Below are positions 2,364 through 64,000 of a stretch of 64,000 bases of DNA, piece by piece; the stretch's first letter is position 1, and each line of letters starts with the position of its first letter. The position numbers and the translations under genes were made by a program. The DNA lies in the sequence record NC_009760.1. One strand, given 5' to 3'. The notes beneath the pieces are model-generated. The model made no database searches, was not told the DNA's origin, and saw only the letters and a list, made by a program, of their open reading frames with translations.

Positions 2364-4337
2364 TTACACCTCTTGAATTAACTCATCCGGCAACTCTTCC
2401 ATAAAGCGTGAAGGTGTTTGCCAGTTATACGTACGGTTATAATCCATACGACGCTCTGCATGAGTGAAATACAATATCTCCTGCGCACGAGTGATACCTA
2501 CATACGCTAGGCGACGTTCTTCTTCTAATTGAACTGTATCAGATAGACTACGTGAATGCGGGAATAATCCCTCTTCCATACCAATCATAAATACGACTGG
2601 ATACTCAAGTCCTTTCGAAGTATGAAGCGTCATTAATTGTACTTTGTCTTGATTGACTACTTTATCTTGCTGAGATTGCAGTGCGATTTGGTCAAGGAAG
2701 TCTTGTAGATGTGGGTCTTTATTCTCTTGTTCATAACCCTTCGCAATCTTCGTTAACTCCTTGATATTATCAATACGGCGGAAGTCTTCTTCCTTACCAG
2801 TTTCCTGCAACTTCTCAATGTACTGCGTATATTTAAAGATAAGTTCTAACATGTCTGTAATCGGTTGGTCAGATACGCTCTTACCTGCTTCATACAATGC
2901 ATTTAAACGAGCGACTGTATCTGTTAATCCTACGAATGCAGCTTTCGCTTTCGCTGTCTTCGGATTGAAATACTCCACCACTTCATAGATAGACTTGTTC
3001 TTTTCGTTTGCCTTATCTTTGATTTGTTTAATCGTTGTTTTACCAACGCCCGCTTGCATGTTCAAGATACGGTCACATGCAATATCGTTGTCAGGATTAA
3101 CAGCTAACTGCATCCATGACATGATGTCCTTGATTTCCTTACGTTCATAGAAGGAGAATCCGGAAACCATATTGTACGGAATGTTATGGCGGATAAACTG
3201 ATCCTCAAGGAGACGAGATTGAACGTTCGTGCGATACAGAAGTGCAATGTCTTCATACTTGTATCCATCGAATGTACATAGGTTCTGAATCTCCTGTGCA
3301 ATGAAGCGTGCTTCTTGTTCATCGTCCGGCGCTTCATACTTACGTATCTTCTCACCCATTCCTTTATCCGTGAAGCAAGTTTTATTCATCTGCTTCGTAT
3401 TATGTTTCATGATGGCGTTACCTGCGGTTACAATCGTATTGGTAGAACGATAATTCTGCTCTAGCTTCACGACCTTCGTACCCGGATAATCTTTTTGGAA
3501 GTTGAGTATCTTCTCAATGTTCGCTCCACGCCACCCGTATATGCCTTGATAATCATCGCCAACGACAAATATGTTATTCTTATCGCCGACAATGTTTTTA
3601 ATCATACGGTACTGACATTCATTCGTATCTTGATACTCATCACACATAATATACTTGTATCGTCGCTGGAACTTCCTGCGTACTTCCGTATTGCTTTCCA
3701 GTAAGATAACCATCTTCATGATTAAGTCATCAAAGTCTACGGCATTGTTACGTGCCATTCTGTCTTGATAACGCTCATAGATTCTCGCAAATGACTTATC
3801 TTGCGGTTCCATTTGCTTACGGAAATCTTTCGGCAGTATCATATCATTCTTCAAGTTACTAATACGGGACTGCGTTGCATATACGTTCTGCTTTGAGTCA
3901 TCCATATTGTTACTCTTTAGTAACTCTTTAATGACTTTGTTTGTATCCTCTGAATCGAAGATCGTCCAGTTCTTTTTCAGACCTGCTTCACTATAATATT
4001 GATGTAACCAACGTACAGCTAGAGAGTGGAATGTACCAATCATAATCTTCTTGGCTCTCGCTTCTCCTACCTCATTGCCGATACGTTCCTTCATTTCTGT
4101 TGCTGCTTTATTTGTAAACGTCACGGTTAATATACGGCGTGGGTCAATACCATTTTCTAAAATATACCCCACACGCTTTTGAAGAACCCTTGTTTTTCCA
4201 CTTCCTGCTCCGGCGATAACTAAACTAGGGTTCTTTACTGTTTTAACAACCGCTTCCTTCTGAGCTGGATTCAGACCATCTAATAACTTACGTATCCGTT
4301 TCCGCTTTCTCTTTCTTTCTTCATCCATTACTACCAC
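2364..4337 (-). CDS. pcrA: PcrA/UvrD/Rep superfamily 1 DNA helicase
   Basis: Walker A AGAGSGKT, DEYQD, VGDDYQGIYGWRGA, LEQNYRST, TLHTSKGLEY, EERRLAYVGITRA. Confidence 0.95.
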   Translation of the reverse strand: MVVMDEERKRKRKRIRKLLDGLNPAQKEAVVKTVKNPSLVIAGAGSGKTRVLQKRVGYILENGIDPRRILTVTFTNKAATEMKERIGNEVGEARAKKIMIGTFHSLAVRWLHQYYSEAGLKKNWTIFDSEDTNKVIKELLKSNNMDDSKQNVYATQSRISNLKNDMILPKDFRKQMEPQDKSFARIYERYQDRMARNNAVDFDDLIMKMVILLESNTEVRRKFQRRYKYIMCDEYQDTNECQYRMIKNIVGDKNNIFVVGDDYQGIYGWRGANIEKILNFQKDYPGTKVVKLEQNYRSTNTIVTAGNAIMKHNTKQMNKTCFTDKGMGEKIRKYEAPDDEQEARFIAQEIQNLCTFDGYKYEDIALLYRTNVQSRLLEDQFIRHNIPYNMVSGFSFYERKEIKDIMSWMQLAVNPDNDIACDRILNMQAGVGKTTIKQIKDKANEKNKSIYEVVEYFNPKTAKAKAAFVGLTDTVARLNALYEAGKSVSDQPITDMLELIFKYTQYIEKLQETGKEEDFRRIDNIKELTKIAKGYEQENKDPHLQDFLDQIALQSQQDKVVNQDKVQLMTLHTSKGLEYPVVFMIGMEEGLFPHSRSLSDTVQLEEERRLAYVGITRAQEILYFTHAERRMDYNRTYNWQTPSRFMEELPDELIQEV

Positions 4338-27611: not shown

Positions 27612-27725
27612 TGCAACGGGCAGGATTCGAACCTGCGACTTTCTGTATACTCCGGTGACCTCTGTCATGAGCAGTAGTGACCCATCTCCGTATACAGACT
27701 GTTTTACCCCTAAACTACCGGAAGC
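27612..27725 (-). ncRNA. tRNA-like RNA with ~40-nt insertion in the anticodon arm
   Basis: D arm GTTT/AAAC, T arm GCAGG-TTCGAAT-CCTGC, variable loop AAGTC. The TCTGT/ACAGA stem encloses 47 nt instead of 7. Acceptor stem is imperfect and there is no CCA. Confidence 0.6.
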
Positions 27726-27865
27726 ATGGAGAAGAGATACTATGCAGTGCATCCCTTCAACAGTGTGTAAAATTTACATAACGATGAATCGGTTAAAGTC
27801 ATCGTGACATTTTAGCGAGCCTATCGGTTAAATATGGCTCTTGTGGTGGGCTTTGCCCATGATAT

Positions 27866-27892
27866 AAAAAGGAGAGGATATTTCACCTCTCC
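27866..27892 (-). terminator. intrinsic terminator
   Basis: GGAGAGG/CCTCTCC stem plus T5 on the - strand. Confidence 0.65.
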
Positions 27893-28170
27893 GCTCCGAG
27901 TCATGTGATCCTATACAAATAACTCATAAGACTAAACTAACAATAATCGTAGAACCCAATACCAATAATAACCTATAGATAGAGACTAACACTTTGAAAC
28001 CAATTAATATTTTTAGCTAATTAGACCATTGAAAATTAATGAGATACAAAAAACATAGCCAACATATCAAGGCAGGTGTGATTTGCTTTGGAGATAGAAA
28101 TTTAGGCGGGCATTACGCCCATAGGAGGGAACACACGCAGGACTCCCCAGTTCTCGTGCATTCGCCTTTA

Positions 28171-28245
28171 GGTCATCATGTAAGGTTTCGAACCCCATTC
28201 TCTGACATTGTTAGGTCAGCGCTTTACCTATTAAGCTACGATGAC
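28171..28245 (-). tRNA. atypical tRNA or pseudo-tRNA (Val-like AAC, 8-nt anticodon loop)
   Basis: Acceptor GTCATCG/TGATGAC, D arm GCTT/AAGC, anticodon stem CTGAC/GTCAG with loop CTAACAAT, T loop TTCGAAA. Extra CA between T and acceptor stems; no CCA. Confidence 0.6.
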
Positions 28246-57606: not shown

Positions 57607-57874
57607 ATATAAAGCATCAAGCGTGCGAATGCGTTTCGAATGAAAGCAATGCGACGCAAAATGAAGATGCCATATATACAGGGACGACGAACCATAACTG
57701 GTAGAGCGTACCAGTTGTACAAGAACGACGCTGGGTGGTGAACGGCTCGCTCTGCTCGCCGTCGTAGGTCACTGCGTTTCCCCACAACACCCTTCCTGCG
57801 AATACGCCGGAGGCGGGGTATCACACAAGCAGAACCTCTATTGACTGCGAACACGGTCTGAATGTACGACCGTA

Positions 57875-58621
57875 CTACGCTCCACATCTTAACCATGCAT
57901 CTCTTATTTCATAACCGGTTGGCTGACGTTCATTGTTGCTAACGAACAACTCACGAAATTCGACCAACCACGATGCATCTACTGTTCCGCTGTATCTTGT
58001 CACTAGAGTATTTTCCTTACGCTCCGCAGGACTCACATTCTCCTGCTTCGGTTTATTATGCGTCTGTACTCGCTTACGCTCCTCTTGTTTTACTCGTACG
58101 GATGCTGGCATCTTACGTACTCGGACTAACGCTTTTACTATGCGTGCAATGTCACCATGCACTCCATTACTGAATGGCTTAAATGAATCAATCGCTGACT
58201 GTATCATCATTGGTTTCATAGGTTTCCCATCCACCTTTATATATGGTCGTGCATCAGATGGATTCCATCCAATCTTAACTGTTACTCCCTTTTGTTTGAA
58301 GACAACGCCCAGCTCGTTGCTACGCACATACTCAAATACTTTCGTGTACGCTGGTGCTGTCTTTTCTTCCGGCTCGCTGTCGCTCGCCGAATCATATCCT
58401 AGTTCCTCTGCTACATAGAAGTCATTCAGACACTCTATGCAAATGTGTCCATCATCCTCTGTGTAACATAGGTGACGAGACTCCTCATTGCAGAGTTCAC
58501 ATTGCTCGCTGACGCTCGCAAGTTTTACAGTCATCACTTTATAACTACGACCAAGTTTCTTTGTTTTCCAATCCATCCATAATACATATCTCTCTTCATT
58601 CACTACTGTTAAATTCATCAT
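57875..58621 (-). CDS. hypothetical protein with zinc-finger-like segment
   Basis: GGAGG SD; CELC...CIEC. Confidence 0.65.
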   Translation of the reverse strand: MMNLTVVNEERYVLWMDWKTKKLGRSYKVMTVKLASVSEQCELCNEESRHLCYTEDDGHICIECLNDFYVAEELGYDSASDSEPEEKTAPAYTKVFEYVRSNELGVVFKQKGVTVKIGWNPSDARPYIKVDGKPMKPMMIQSAIDSFKPFSNGVHGDIARIVKALVRVRKMPASVRVKQEERKRVQTHNKPKQENVSPAERKENTLVTRYSGTVDASWLVEFRELFVSNNERQPTGYEIRDAWLRCGA

Positions 58622-58649
58622 TTTAAATTCCTCCAATTTATATGTTTTT

Positions 58650-59345
58650 TGTTTAAAGCCGGGGACTCATTAGTGGTAGCCTGTTCAGGGCATCTCAGAC
58701 TTCACCAATCGTGTCCATGAAGTTGCTAGGTCAACTGACACTGACTGAACAACTCCGTAGAGATTGTTTTCACATGTGCGTGCGTTATGTCTTCTAGTCA
58801 TGACGTACTCTCCCTCGACCAAGAGTTAGAGTCGGCGTCCTAGCTTCTTGCACTTCCCTCGAAAGGGTGGCTATCCACTAGGGGCGTCCTCCATTCTTGT
58901 TAGTACGGAGAGCAGCAATGACATACATGATGTCACGCAATGAGGACTCGTGTTGTCTTAACCCGAAGCAATCTGTGTCCTCACTGCTTCGGGATGTTAG
59001 CTGGTTGCTAAGTTTCCTAGTACCATGTTTGTCCGCTACCCTATCGCGCTATCACTGATTACGGAGTGACCATCCGGGATACTGAATAAATGCTACATAT
59101 ATCTCACGACATACTGCATTGCCTGATTCCTCAACAGATCTCTTGTTTATACCGACGTTGATTCAGACGTCGAGGCATACTTGTGAAACGGTGGATGCTT
59201 ACCGTGCCTGATAGGTCGCTACTCGTCTACTGTTATGAGTAACAACGATGTTAGGTCTGATGATTCTACGAGGGCAACCAACCCTCCTCTCTGGTGTAGT
59301 TATAGTTGACACCATAAGAGACACGATATGCTCATGTCTCCTAGC
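58650..59345 (-). ncRNA. candidate ~700-nt highly structured non-coding RNA with pseudoknot
   Basis: No ORF of 60 aa or more on either strand; many nested stems, a UUCG tetraloop and an H-type pseudoknot at 58942-58993. Confidence 0.6.
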
Positions 59346-59356
59346 TACCAACTATA

Positions 59357-61009
59357 TTACTGACGACCTAACAACATAGCTTCTAACTGTGTATTTAACG
59401 CTTCTTCATCTCCTGTCTCATGGAATAGTGCCATCGCATCACACAATGGTGTTGATACTAACTTCTCTGCTGTCATTCTTAATACGCCGTTGTCATCGAA
59501 GTCTACATCAGCTACTTGTTCATGATTGTTGTACGGCCATAACACTAAGTCTTTTGATACGAAGCCACTGTTCATCATGTTCTCTTTTGTATATACGGTG
59601 TATCCTCTCTTACGTAATGTATCAGCAACGATTTCCACACTGCCTTTATACTCAACACGACCTGTATATAACTCTTCAATGAATAAGGAATGATCTTCAC
59701 CAATGCGGATTAAGAATCTACCACCCCATCTGTTTTCACCTTCATCGAAATAGCCAACGATTGTCGCACCGGATACATTACCCAACACACCGATGTTGTT
59801 GTCATTCACCTTACCTAGTTCCCACTTCATACATGACGTCCACTCCTTATCTGTTGATACACGTAGTAGATCATCCTTCATACCACTGAACTTCACATGA
59901 CCTGTCTTCTTCGTATTACGTGTTTCTACAATGTGTTTTACTTTGCCTAATGGAATACGAATGTCATCACCCAATATTTCCATCACTTGCGGAAACTCTT
60001 TTTCAATTCTGTTGATATACTTCACGACGCTGATCTTTCTGCCATCATCTAGTTGTACCTTGTTCTCCATGAAATCATCCTCATCTAATCGTTGTAATCG
60101 TAATAGTCTCATTTGGAATATTACTGTGTGTTTGTGTAATGGATTCTCATAATCGACACGCAATGCACTTGATACATCTCGCAATGCTGAATGGAACATC
60201 TCATGTGAGTGATTGATTAACTCAATGTCGAATGAATCTACAAGCAATGGATGTGCTGCTACTTGTTTGTGATTCGCTATCTTCATCATGTGATTGATTA
60301 ATACTCTTGGATTGTTATCTAATCGTGCTAAGTAATACATATCAACCATCATCACATTACCGATGTCGTACTTACCTGTGAATGTCATCTCTCTATCTAC
60401 GTATGCATACTTCTTAGTTACATAGTTTTGTAGAACACCTTGTTCATATAGATACTCACAATAGTCTCTGCTTAACTTGTATTCATGTCCGAGTTTGAAT
60501 CCATACTTCTTCGCACATAATGATGCTCTGATATAACCTGTTGGTTCGAACTTGAGTGGACGAATGATACGTTGTTTGAATCCAATCTCTGCTGGTTCTG
60601 TGATAACAACCTTGCCGTCGTAGTAACATGCAGTGATGTTAATGTCGAAGTCCTCTTGTACATACTGACGAATATCATCTGTGTTCACCATCATGATCTC
60701 TACACGATACTTACCTATCGTACCTTTTAATACTGATACAATTTTACTGATCTCAATGACACGTACTGATTCATCATCATCTTCTACTGTGATACTTGGA
60801 CGTTCTCTGATTACCTCGCTGAACATAAAGCCCTTGCTTAATACGTGATATAATACCTCTGACTTACATGCGTCGGATGTAGATACGAACACATCAATGT
60901 CATTAGGTTCTTTACCCATCAATGCATCTAATACACATCCACCTGCGATAATACCTTTGAAACCTTTTACCACTTTGTATACTTCTTTAATACCTGTACT
61001 TGCTGTCAT
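59357..61009 (-). CDS. CCA/poly(A) polymerase-type nucleotidyltransferase fused to an unknown C-terminal domain
   Basis: IIAGGCVLDALMGKEPNDIDVF and FDINITA head motifs; C-terminal WTSCM...WGGRFLIR domain. Confidence 0.75.
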   Translation of the reverse strand: MTASTGIKEVYKVVKGFKGIIAGGCVLDALMGKEPNDIDVFVSTSDACKSEVLYHVLSKGFMFSEVIRERPSITVEDDDESVRVIEISKIVSVLKGTIGKYRVEIMMVNTDDIRQYVQEDFDINITACYYDGKVVITEPAEIGFKQRIIRPLKFEPTGYIRASLCAKKYGFKLGHEYKLSRDYCEYLYEQGVLQNYVTKKYAYVDREMTFTGKYDIGNVMMVDMYYLARLDNNPRVLINHMMKIANHKQVAAHPLLVDSFDIELINHSHEMFHSALRDVSSALRVDYENPLHKHTVIFQMRLLRLQRLDEDDFMENKVQLDDGRKISVVKYINRIEKEFPQVMEILGDDIRIPLGKVKHIVETRNTKKTGHVKFSGMKDDLLRVSTDKEWTSCMKWELGKVNDNNIGVLGNVSGATIVGYFDEGENRWGGRFLIRIGEDHSLFIEELYTGRVEYKGSVEIVADTLRKRGYTVYTKENMMNSGFVSKDLVLWPYNNHEQVADVDFDDNGVLRMTAEKLVSTPLCDAMALFHETGDEEALNTQLEAMLLGRQ

Positions 61010-61031
61010 GTTTATTCTCTCCTTTTAATTT

Positions 61032-61060
61032 AAATAAGGAGCCGAGATATACCCGACTCC
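61032..61060 (-). terminator. intrinsic terminator
   Basis: GGAGTCGGG/CTCGGCTCC stem plus TTATTT. Confidence 0.65.
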
Positions 61061-61071
61061 GATGATTGTTA

Positions 61072-61746
61072 TTATTTATTTAATACTTCTGCTACTTTCA
61101 GTTTCCATACACCTCTTGTTGGCTTACCTTGTTTACCTAAGTCTCTCATGTATGCTTGATACCCACTGTTGAACTTACTACCTACCTTCTTGAACTTGTT
61201 CGCTGCATATACTTCTGCACCAATCTCTTTATGTGCTTCGATGATAAGATTAGAGATTCTTTCATCCATTGCTGATTCATATACTTTAACTTCCTTCACT
61301 TCCTCTTCTTCTTCCTGTGGAGTGATAACAGGCTCTTCTTGTTGTGGCACGATACTTACTTGTCCTTGCATCATACCTTCCACGATACCACGCATGATAC
61401 CTTGTACTGCATCTGCTAATTCCTCTTGTACAACTTCTCTTACTGTTGCTCTGATCTCCTCTTTAAACACTGGCATTACATCCTCTCTAACTGTTTTGAT
61501 GATTGTATTCTGTACGTTGTTTGCCCACATTTGTGTTAGTGTCCCAATACTATCACGAGCGATAACAGCGAATATATCCTCTGTTGATACTGGCTTCTTC
61601 TTAATAGTTGATACGATTTCTTTTGCTACTTCCATTTCAGTTTTCTGTTTTAACTTACCTGCACGAATGATTTCTTCATCACGCTTGTTTGCACCATAAC
61701 GTTTATTCCATCTGTCTAACCCTGATTGTGTATTCTTCATAGTCAT
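61072..61746 (-). CDS. hypothetical protein
   Basis: Tiled ORF. Confidence 0.65.
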   Translation of the reverse strand: MTMKNTQSGLDRWNKRYGANKRDEEIIRAGKLKQKTEMEVAKEIVSTIKKKPVSTEDIFAVIARDSIGTLTQMWANNVQNTIIKTVREDVMPVFKEEIRATVREVVQEELADAVQGIMRGIVEGMMQGQVSIVPQQEEPVITPQEEEEEVKEVKVYESAMDERISNLIIEAHKEIGAEVYAANKFKKVGSKFNSGYQAYMRDLGKQGKPTRGVWKLKVAEVLNK

Positions 61747-62090
61747 TAGATTGTATCCTCCTGTGTAGATGCTGTTTCAGCCATCATCATTATTTGTTCA
61801 AACATAATCTCGAATCTTACTTCACTTCCTCCATTACCTTGTGCATTCAGTCGAATACCATGATGTGCATACATTTGTTTAATAATCTTTGCTTCATTTG
61901 TGCTTTTTAATCTTACGTTTGTTTTGATTCTTGTTACAGTCAATCTGTCGATACCAAGAGATAACATGTACGATACGCAATCTTTTAAATAAGCCTTAGC
62001 TTCTTGTTGTTGGTCTAGGATTAGCTTTTGTGCTACGTTGTGTGATAATACCCCTTCAATCATTGAGATTGTTTCATTTGACAACTTCAT
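61746..62090 (-). CDS. hypothetical protein
   Basis: Tiled ORF. Confidence 0.6.
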   Translation of the reverse strand: MKLSNETISMIEGVLSHNVAQKLILDQQQEAKAYLKDCVSYMLSLGIDRLTVTRIKTNVRLKSTNEAKIIKQMYAHHGIRLNAQGNGGSEVRFEIMFEQIMMMAETASTQEDTI

Positions 62091-63115
62091 TATTCCTTAT
62101 CCCCTTTACTAATTAGTTCACTTGTTGCACGTAATGTTCCTGATGCTAAATCCACTCCTGCATGACCTACTTCTCCGCCTAGCTTGATAACTGTTCTACC
62201 GGCACGTTCTGTTACATTCAATACTTCTCTTGTTAAGCCGAGTGCAGATTCTAATACACTGTTTAATAATTGTGTTCCTCTGTCTACACCTGCATGACCG
62301 TACTTATCTACTACAGCAGCTCCTTTCAATAGCCCTTGTGCGGCACTTAATGTTAAACCTTTGTACTTCGTTCTGATTAATTCCTGTACATCACCTCCCT
62401 TCAATGCATGTAATTTCTCTTCCACTGAACGGTACTCTAATACTAGTTCGTTGTACTTTTGAGGCTTAGTGATATTCTTGTTCATCTCTTGTTGAATATG
62501 ACCTAGTTGTTTATCTAGCCCATCAATGACCTTTTGCTTATCCCCTTCTGTTAATACCAATTCCTGTACTGCTTCTTCTACTACCTGTATGCTATCCTCT
62601 GCTACTGCCTGTGCTGTTGCATCTGTTACTTGTTGCATCTTCTCTGCTGCCATAGCCAATACTTCTTGTTCTTTCTTAGCTAGTGCTTGTTTCGTTAACT
62701 CTCTATGCTGTGCTGTTAGTTCTTCCTGCATTGCTTTAACCTCTTCCTCTGTGTATACCTTACCTTCTGTTGTTGCTGCTACTTGTTCTTTAGCCATGTT
62801 CATTACCTCCATTTGTTGTTGTATTGCAGTGAATTGATTGATGATCTCTTTCAGTATCTCTGTACGCATACCCATGTTGACGTTAGCACCTAAGTTGTTA
62901 GCCTGTTGTACTAGTGATAATCGTTGACTATGCATTACTGTTACTCGTTGATATAGCTTGATGATGTTCTCTTTCTTTGTTCTATCACCTTGATACTCTA
63001 CTAATTGTTTTTCTGCTACTACCTTGATGTTTAAGCCCATATCCTTACATAGCGCCCCTGTAATACGGTTAATATCCTTTACTGTCATACCTTCGATTGT
63101 TTTTAAGTCTGTCAT
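62090..63115 (-). CDS. hypothetical coiled-coil protein
   Basis: 341-aa ORF with AGGAG. Confidence 0.7.
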   Translation of the reverse strand: MTDLKTIEGMTVKDINRITGALCKDMGLNIKVVAEKQLVEYQGDRTKKENIIKLYQRVTVMHSQRLSLVQQANNLGANVNMGMRTEILKEIINQFTAIQQQMEVMNMAKEQVAATTEGKVYTEEEVKAMQEELTAQHRELTKQALAKKEQEVLAMAAEKMQQVTDATAQAVAEDSIQVVEEAVQELVLTEGDKQKVIDGLDKQLGHIQQEMNKNITKPQKYNELVLEYRSVEEKLHALKGGDVQELIRTKYKGLTLSAAQGLLKGAAVVDKYGHAGVDRGTQLLNSVLESALGLTREVLNVTERAGRTVIKLGGEVGHAGVDLASGTLRATSELISKGDKE

Positions 63116-63136
63116 AATAATTAGCTCCTTTTATAA

Positions 63137-63283
63137 TTAGTTGTTTTTGTTTTTATTGATTAACTCACCTAGTGTTGGTGCTAGTTTAATACCTTGTTTC
63201 TTTTTGACTATGCTAGTTGATACCTTACCGATACCTGCTTTCTCCACTGTGTTAATGAATGTAACTACTGCTCTCTTCTTCAT
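63137..63283 (-). CDS. small basic protein (48 aa)
   Basis: MKKRAVVTF... with GGAGGAG; not in the ORF track. Confidence 0.55.
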   Translation of the reverse strand: MKKRAVVTFINTVEKAGIGKVSTSIVKKKQGIKLAPTLGELINKNKNN

Positions 63284-63295
63284 ACCTAACTCCTC

Positions 63296-63916
63296 CTATG
63301 CAAATAAGTTTTTAATCTTACCTAATAGACTACTGAATACACCCTGCTTACCTTCTCCTGGTGGTAATTCATTGTTGTCCTTTAGTCTCTTGATGTAGAT
63401 GATACGTTTCTCTAACTCAGGTACTAGATGATGGATACCTAGTCTGATACCCTCTGCTCTCATGATGTTAAGCATTAGTAATACACTCTCCTTTCCACAC
63501 TGTTGTACTGCATACTCATCACACTTAAACTCTTGCTCTGTCACCTCGTGCTGTTCTGTTAGATGTCCAGTAGGATACATGATATGACCTAGTTCATGAG
63601 ATACTAGTGCTTGTCTTACATACTGGTTACTGTTGAATGATTTATAGTCATATACAATAATCATGTAATCTAAGTAGTATCCTGTTAGTTCAGCGATTTG
63701 TTCATTGTCATACACTGTCATCATTACAGTTAAGATACGAGTGTCGATGTGGTGCTTCTCGATGTCCTCAATGGATAGTTGATGATGACTTGCTAAGTCT
63801 TGTGGTTGTTCGATGATAGCAACATGTTCTGTCTTGCCGTTGATGTTTACAGTGAATACTTCTTTCACCGATTGTCTTACTTCCATTACTTCTGCTTGCG
63901 TTAGTTTGTCTGTCAT
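63296..63916 (-). CDS. zincin (HExxH) metallopeptidase-like protein
   Basis: LVSHELGH...EQEFKCDEYA (M48-like). Confidence 0.7.
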   Translation of the reverse strand: MTDKLTQAEVMEVRQSVKEVFTVNINGKTEHVAIIEQPQDLASHHQLSIEDIEKHHIDTRILTVMMTVYDNEQIAELTGYYLDYMIIVYDYKSFNSNQYVRQALVSHELGHIMYPTGHLTEQHEVTEQEFKCDEYAVQQCGKESVLLMLNIMRAEGIRLGIHHLVPELEKRIIYIKRLKDNNELPPGEGKQGVFSSLLGKIKNLFA

Positions 63917-63947
63917 TTGTCATTCCTCCATTAGTTTAGGTGTAGTC

Positions 63948-63981
63948 AAAAGGGGTGGGGCATGAAACAACCCTATACCCC
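63948..63981 (-). terminator. terminator-like hairpin
   Basis: GGGGTATAGGG/CCCCACCCC stem plus TTTT. Confidence 0.45.
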
Positions 63982-64000
63982 CATTGCTATATATAAGACG

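Follow-up and report, generated by a model that had tools for sequence, protein, structure and literature searches.

The window analysed here comprises the last 64 kb of the genome of the Bacillus thuringiensis jumbo phage 0305phi8-36 (NC_009760, 218,948 bp). On its minus strand, a 735-bp gap separates ORF102 from ORF101. The gap lies inside the 6,479-bp terminal repeat, so the genome holds two identical copies, at 1119-1835 and 213588-214304. ORF102 has a weak PolyA_pol-head nucleotidyltransferase match, and its 91%-identical relative carries a precomputed Gad2 label. ORF101 has no Pfam, NCBIfam, PADLOC, PDB or Atlas relative of known function, and belongs to a small family of 37 clusters among 1.84 billion proteins. 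The record annotates nothing in the gap, and it is not mentioned in the two genome papers consulted.

The gap holds no ORF over 50 aa on the gene strand and is one of the longest ORF-free stretches of this tightly packed genome, with a G+C content of 46.5% against 41.8% for the genome. The minus strand folds to a minimum free energy (MFE) of -232.4 kcal/mol, i.e., z = -4.9 against 100 dinucleotide-preserving shuffles, whereas the plus strand gives z = -2.3. Forty random 717-nt windows of the same genome gave a mean z of -1.08 (sd 1.10, minimum -4.2), and the second-lowest of them overlaps the tRNA-like region. The stems listed in the original prediction, which had proposed a large non-coding RNA with a pseudoknot, are all present in the sequence. 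As folding energy alone would not prove function, we searched for relatives.

Conservation and covariation of the gap

GenBank phages were searched by DNA and by tblastn with ORF101, ORF102, the polymerase and two distant ORF101 homologs, and only the phage itself and remote YonO-like polymerases were found. In IMG/VR, GTDB genomes and JGI metagenomes, searched with three DNA patterns and two protein alignments, the only real hits were near-identical copies from one NCBI metagenome assembly. In contrast, a collection of 5.8 billion proteins contained close relatives of ORF102 and a graded series of ORF101 homologs down to about 45% identity, on contigs (hereafter, L numbers) assembled from seven further sequencing runs. 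Only nine sequences in three clades were available. In clade 1 (L005-L011 and the more diverged L028), ORF102 differs from the phage at 3.7-8.0% of nucleotides, the gap at 0.1-0.5% and ORF101 at 0.5-1.5% (figures for L005-L011). In the distant clades 2 (L019, L026, L027) and 3 (L023, L024, L025), a gene-free gap of 690-780 nt lies directly upstream of ORF101 homologs that are only 45-60% identical. ORF102 is absent there and the upstream gene is ORF103-like, so the nucleotidyltransferase is an accessory insertion and not a partner of the RNA. The ORF103-like proteins gave no DIP1984 match, and only that of L023 carries a CCHC zinc knuckle. The relatives were found through ORF101, thus the linkage of the gap to this gene is partly built into the sampling, and one distant ORF101 homolog (P0025) has only a 95-nt upstream gap by its gene calls.

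The gaps are alignable, and the distances between invariant blocks are nearly constant across clades, i.e., 131-138 nt from AGGGTAGC to TCTCCG and 228-237 nt from TCTCCG to CACTAAT. To determine whether RNA structure is under selection, we wrote a structure of 52 pairs for the central 255 nt from the phage's own stems and counted it over the nine sequences. A total of 87.3% of cells are paired, against 37-45% when partners are slid by 1-3 columns, and 22 pairs have changes on both sides, against 6-10 in the slid controls; none of 500 shuffles reached the observed values. The hairpin of the original prediction changes from CCCGAAGCA/TGCTTCGGG to TCCATAGCA/TGCTATGGA and then to CTCTGAGC/GCTCAGGG. 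Its loop pairs, in every sequence, with the segment just before the invariant ATTGCGTG, and the H-type pseudoknot is therefore real. As the structure was derived from clade 1, the other clades were also checked alone. Clade 2 pairs at 96% (33-45% slid), whereas clade 3 pairs at only 65% (35-50% slid) in the automatic alignment, although its own consensus fold gives an equivalent arm built from different sequence. Seven helices of the 5' domain (30 pairs) are 98% paired against 34-49% slid, with 8 compensatory pairs against 0-1.

G-U cells outnumber A-C cells 35 to 12, thus the folded strand is the minus strand. The element is better conserved than third codon positions of ORF101, 0.97 against 0.82 for the phage and L028, and 0.70 against 0.46 for the 3' domain of the phage and L019. 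No reading frame is conserved and substitutions show no three-base periodicity, which excludes coding.

Of the other stems in the original prediction, CCTAG/CTAGG with the arm around it, GACGT/ACGTC, ACGGT/ACCGT (GTGGT/ACCAT in L028) and GGTGT/ACACC are supported by covariation. GAGGG/CCCTC is kept with only G-C to G-U changes, and TGACAT/ATGTCA holds in clades 1 and 2 but only weakly in clade 3. TGTTCAG/CTGAACA with its inner hairpins and GAGACA/TGTCTC are not conserved beyond clade 1; in clade 3, other stable hairpins sit at the place of the latter.

Overall, the element has a 5' domain of short hairpins with conserved loops and a 3' domain of constant length, the latter closed by pairing of two almost invariant blocks. 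Inside this closure lie the pseudoknotted hairpin, a small hairpin, the arm of roughly 105 nt with its three-way tip, and a less securely aligned 130-nt subdomain. The closing helix and a candidate second pseudoknot rest on invariant bases and not on covariation. Clade 2 lacks part of the 5' domain, and clade 3 has an extra module.

Features of the gap and its flanking genes (window coordinates, all on the minus strand)
Coordinates	Feature	Description
59357..61009	ORF102	550 aa; nucleotidyltransferase; only in clade 1; fast-evolving; not part of the RNA module
58622..59356	Gene-free gap	Between the stop of ORF102 (59357) and the start of ORF101 (58621)
58666..59342	Conserved structured RNA element	RNA positions 15-691 counted from 59356
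59316..59342	5' hairpin	AGGAGACA/TGTCTCTT; specific to clade 1; different stable UNCG-capped hairpins at the same place in clade 3; may serve as a protective 5' stem
59292..59314	P1	TGGTGT/ACACCA; kept in clades 1 and 3; extended in clade 2, with a G-C to A-U change
59270..59287	P2 and Shine-Dalgarno-like block	Invariant GGAGGGT (59281-59287), partly paired in P2 (GAGGG/CCCTC); no conserved start codon or ORF follows
59153..59172	P5	CGACGT/ACGTCG; CAACGT/ACGTTG and CAACGA/TCGTTG in clade 3; 100% paired, 2 compensatory pairs
59097..59136	P6 and P7	P6, covarying 3-4-bp stem presenting the conserved loop TGAGGWATCAG; P7, GTATGTC/GATATAT capped by GTGA
59031..59078	Small junction	CCC/GGG enclosing two small hairpins, then invariant AGGGTAGC (59035-59042); adjacent CGGAC (59031-59035) may pair with GTCTG in a hairpin loop at 58696-58700 (candidate second pseudoknot; 96% paired against 9-27% slid, no two-sided change)
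58962..58993	P11	CCCGAAGCA/TGCTTCGGG; 9 pairs, 96% paired, 4 compensatory; loop carries the 5' strand of the pseudoknot
58942..58982	H-type pseudoknot	GAGGAC (58977-58982) with GTCCTC (58942-58947); GAGGATT/AATCCTC in clade 2; TAGGAC/GTCCTA and TGGGA/TCCCA in clade 3; 6 pairs, 100% paired, 4 with changes on both sides
58934..58944	Long-range closing helix, 5' strand	CTCATTG-C-GTG; almost invariant; 91% paired against 27-58% slid; one C-G to U-A change
58807..58913	Long arm	GCTCTCC/GGAGAGT closes, in order, CAAGA/TCTTG, TGGAG/CTCTA, CG/CG and CCTAG/CTAGG; tip a three-way junction with a TGG-ATAG-CCA hairpin, a CCCT-TTCG-AGGG hairpin and a purine-rich strand; 12 compensatory pairs
58676..58806	3' subdomain	Length constant across clades; helices not securely aligned; contains conserved ATGAC and the AGTCTG hairpin loop
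58666..58675	Long-range closing helix, 3' strand	CACTAATGAG; almost invariant; 3' edge of the conserved structure
58622..58665	Linker	A-rich, poorly conserved; contains the Shine-Dalgarno sequence (TTGGAGGAA) of ORF101; no terminator
57875..58621	ORF101	248 aa; function unknown; follows the RNA in every relative recovered; N-terminal CxxC...CxxC motif in clades 1 and 2

Transcriptional context and possible roles

In the right-hand repeat copy, the run of same-strand genes from ORF107 to ORF101 continues into small ORFs and into gp99, the YonO/RdRP-family polymerase, and the gene order is the same in the distant relatives. No sigma-70-like promoter and no intrinsic terminator flank the element. 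None of the 14 copies of the phage-specific motif CGTTCGCACG, presumably the promoter candidates of Hardies et al. 2007 (PMC2147016), lies in the repeat, and one copy precedes the polymerase gene. Hardies et al. argue that the right end enters the cell first and that small host-takeover genes lie just inside it. Contigs from three food-fermentation metatranscriptomes cover the whole 5.9-kb stretch, including the flanking genes, whereas one wastewater run gave only scattered pieces. A control search with ORF101 found comparable runs, so no claim of selective accumulation can be made.

Given these patterns, we conclude with high confidence that the 720-base gene-free gap encodes a new family of large, multi-domain RNA of about 680 nt that is selected for its fold, found neither in Rfam 15 nor in the papers searched, although a discrete transcript is neither shown nor excluded and its function is unknown. 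How it acts is also inferred. Host RNA polymerase likely transcribes it early, as part of the polycistronic host-takeover transcript. Its closure through long-range helices, its constant length and its invariant loops favor an independently folding module over a conventional leader, most likely a stable module released by cleavage in the A-rich linkers on either side. A free RNA would need such processing, which is not shown. The module would then serve as a scaffold or decoy, possibly together with the ORF101 protein, with the invariant single-stranded or loop blocks GGAGGGU, UGAGGWAUCAG, AGGGUAGC and AGUCUG as candidate contact sites.

The main rival, possible but less likely, is a giant cis-acting leader of ORF101, in which the invariant CUCUCC block could pair alternatively with GGGAGAG (the arm closure), with GGAGGGU or with the ORF101 Shine-Dalgarno sequence, controlling translation or stability of the downstream mRNA. 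The element ends 35-45 nt before the ORF101 ribosome-binding site in all nine sequences, with no terminator between, though the sampling through ORF101 biases this result. Both strands of the arm-closing helix and the Shine-Dalgarno-like block are invariant while other helices covary freely, as would be expected of a strand with several alternative partners. However, the element is probably more than twice the size of known bacterial cis-regulators, the structure is closed on itself, no conserved helix sequestering the Shine-Dalgarno sequence was seen near the start codon in the alignments, and one C-G to U-A change supports the local arm closure.

It is also conceivable, though unlikely, that the RNA is a working partner of the phage's own machinery, e.g., a template, primer or regulator for gp99, encoded 1.8 kb downstream on the same strand in every clade, which would give a DNA phage an RNA-templated step. 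Alternatively, it may self-assemble, alone or with the ORF101 protein, into a large particle as ROOL and GOLLD do. Nothing found here excludes either version, and nothing supports either directly.

A ribozyme or the RNA subunit of an enzyme, for example one processing the early transcript, is doubtful. The fold is large and pseudoknotted with invariant unpaired blocks, and relatives carry small self-cleaving ribozymes in the same operon (Hammerhead_II in L024 above the gathering score, and sub-threshold HDV-like hits in L019, L023 and L025). However, there is no match to any ribozyme family in Rfam 15, even at E up to 10, no catalytic motif was recognised and there is no biochemical evidence. 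A DNA-level element, such as a replication origin, a packaging or terminal-repeat signal or a protein-binding array, is very unlikely: although the gap lies 1.1-1.8 kb from the genome end, compensatory changes keep base pairs, including a pseudoknot and long-range pairs, that duplex DNA has no need for, one strand is favored, and no iterons or long repeats were found. A decayed gene or neutral spacer is contradicted by the conservation, covariation, constant domain length and absence of a reading-frame signal.

Comparison with known structured RNAs

The original prediction allowed either a member of a class such as GOLLD or ROOL, or a new class. Rfam 15 gave no match to GOLLD (RF01998), ROOL (RF03087), OLE, raiA, HEARO, group I or group II introns, RNase P, tmRNA or 6S RNA, with none in the window at gathering thresholds, none in 58300-59700 at E up to 10 and none in seven relatives at E up to 5. 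The only hits in the region were chance-level snoRNA, miRNA and RsmY matches (E from 0.2 to 10), and ARAGORN found neither tmRNA nor tRNA at 58500-59500. An intron is further excluded because ORF102 ends with its own stop codon, ORF101 has its own ribosome-binding site, and the upstream gene differs between clades. This leaves the new-class alternative.

Large, intricately folded bacterial and phage RNAs are rare, and each one that was followed up revealed unexpected biology, such as RNA-guided nucleases or RNA-only cages. The RNA described here is known from only one phage lineage, seen only in raw assemblies, which limits its generality, but it lies next to the proposed host-takeover region of a cultivable phage for which deletion mutants have been isolated by physical selection (PMC3357382), and may bear on how such phages take over the cell.

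ROOL and GOLLD are likewise large (about 580-800 nt), multi-domain, pseudoknotted RNAs of phages and prophages of Firmicutes with no known function, recognised by covariation rather than by expression. However, GOLLD usually lies next to tRNA genes, whereas the only tRNA hits in the window are at 27617-28245, about 30 kb away, and this RNA is embedded between protein genes in a terminal repeat. The lnc001 and lnc002 RNAs of phage K (Kayvirus) are abundant 0.6-1.2-kb intergenic RNAs of a large Firmicute myovirus with long terminal repeats, transcribed early and of unknown function (PMC9241854). They were defined by RNA-seq without a conserved-structure model and lie near tRNA genes, whereas the RNA here is defined by structure conservation, with no discrete transcript resolved from assembled contigs. 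The phi29 pRNA appears to be a structured phage RNA whose gene lies close to a genome end and is read towards it, but it is 174 nt and belongs to a protein-primed podovirus packaging motor, whereas 0305phi8-36 is a terminase-packaging myovirus, and no similarity is expected. Interestingly, the HEARO/omega RNA of IscB is an example of a large ornate RNA later found to be the partner of the adjacent protein, and the RNA here also has a fixed position next to one protein gene, although ORF101 matches no nuclease and no guide-like variable segment was identified.

Genes flanking the RNA and co-occurring phage lineages

The nucleotidyltransferase gene ORF102 differs by 3.7-8% of nucleotides among clade-1 phages (0305phi8-36 and its closest relatives), while the DNA downstream of it (the gap and ORF101) differs by 0.1-1.5%, and the gene is absent from clades 2 and 3. 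A precomputed record labels its relative as Gad2, but the local Pfam scan shows only a weak PolyA_pol head match. ORF102 looks like an exchangeable anti-defence cassette. In clades 1 and 2, the ORF101 family has an N-terminal CxxC...CxxC motif, in place of which clade 3 and more distant members have an unrelated N-terminus. The conserved C-terminal domain (HGD[IV]A[RQ]IVKAL...) has no known relative, and the family has 37 clusters among 1.84 billion representatives. Interestingly, the ORF103-like protein just upstream of the RNA in the clade-3 relative L023 ends in a CX2CX4HX4C zinc knuckle (Pfam zf-CCHC_2, E 4e-4, below the cut-off), which the other homologs lack.

A food-fermentation metatranscriptome (run X1) and a wastewater run (X4) each hold a second, clade-2-like version of the RNA core beside the clade-1 version, with loose ends that match the clade-2 relative L019, indicating that several lineages of these phages co-occur in such samples.

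Coordinates of features in the window and in the relatives
Feature	Sequence	Coordinates	Strand
Type II hammerhead ribozyme	L024 (clade 3)	557-626	
HDV-like hit	L019 (clade 2)	546-606	
HDV-like hit	L023 (clade 3)	1075-1131	
HDV-like hit	L025 (clade 3)	971-1027	
ORF103-like protein with zinc knuckle	L023	2607-3221	
ORF101	window	57875-58621	
RNA core compared with runs X1 and X4	window	58866-58946	
ORF102	window	59357-61009	
Terminator-like hairpin	window	61038-61060	minus
Region depleted in sigma-70-like promoter matches	window	57800-64000	
Lowest-z background window	window	3336-4052	minus
Motif CGTTCGCACG(G/A)	window and genome	window 56831 and 13 other genome sites (genome 176642-211779)	minus

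Ribozyme hits and background folding

Small self-cleaving ribozyme hits were detected in the same operon of the relatives, in the gap upstream of the ORF105-like gene. The type II hammerhead of L024 is above the Rfam gathering score (46 bits against 37), whereas L019, L023, and L025 have sub-threshold HDV-like hits at the equivalent place. No counterpart was seen in 0305phi8-36 itself. Of the 40 random background windows folded as controls, the lowest had z = -4.2, based on only 22 shuffles.

Transcription signals in and around the terminal repeat

Sigma-70-like promoter matches are depleted in the terminal repeat, with 1 against 10.4 +/- 3.0 expected, and 3 against 9.2 +/- 3.2 expected. A terminator-like hairpin with a T-rich tail lies between ORF103 and ORF102, only about 30 nt before the ORF102 start, and thus ORF102 and the RNA are reached by read-through, or from a start that was not recognized. 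The motif CGTTCGCACG(G/A) occurs 14 times in the right arm, with one copy just upstream of the gp99 polymerase gene and none in the terminal repeat. This count matches the 14 phage-specific promoter candidates of Hardies et al. 2007.
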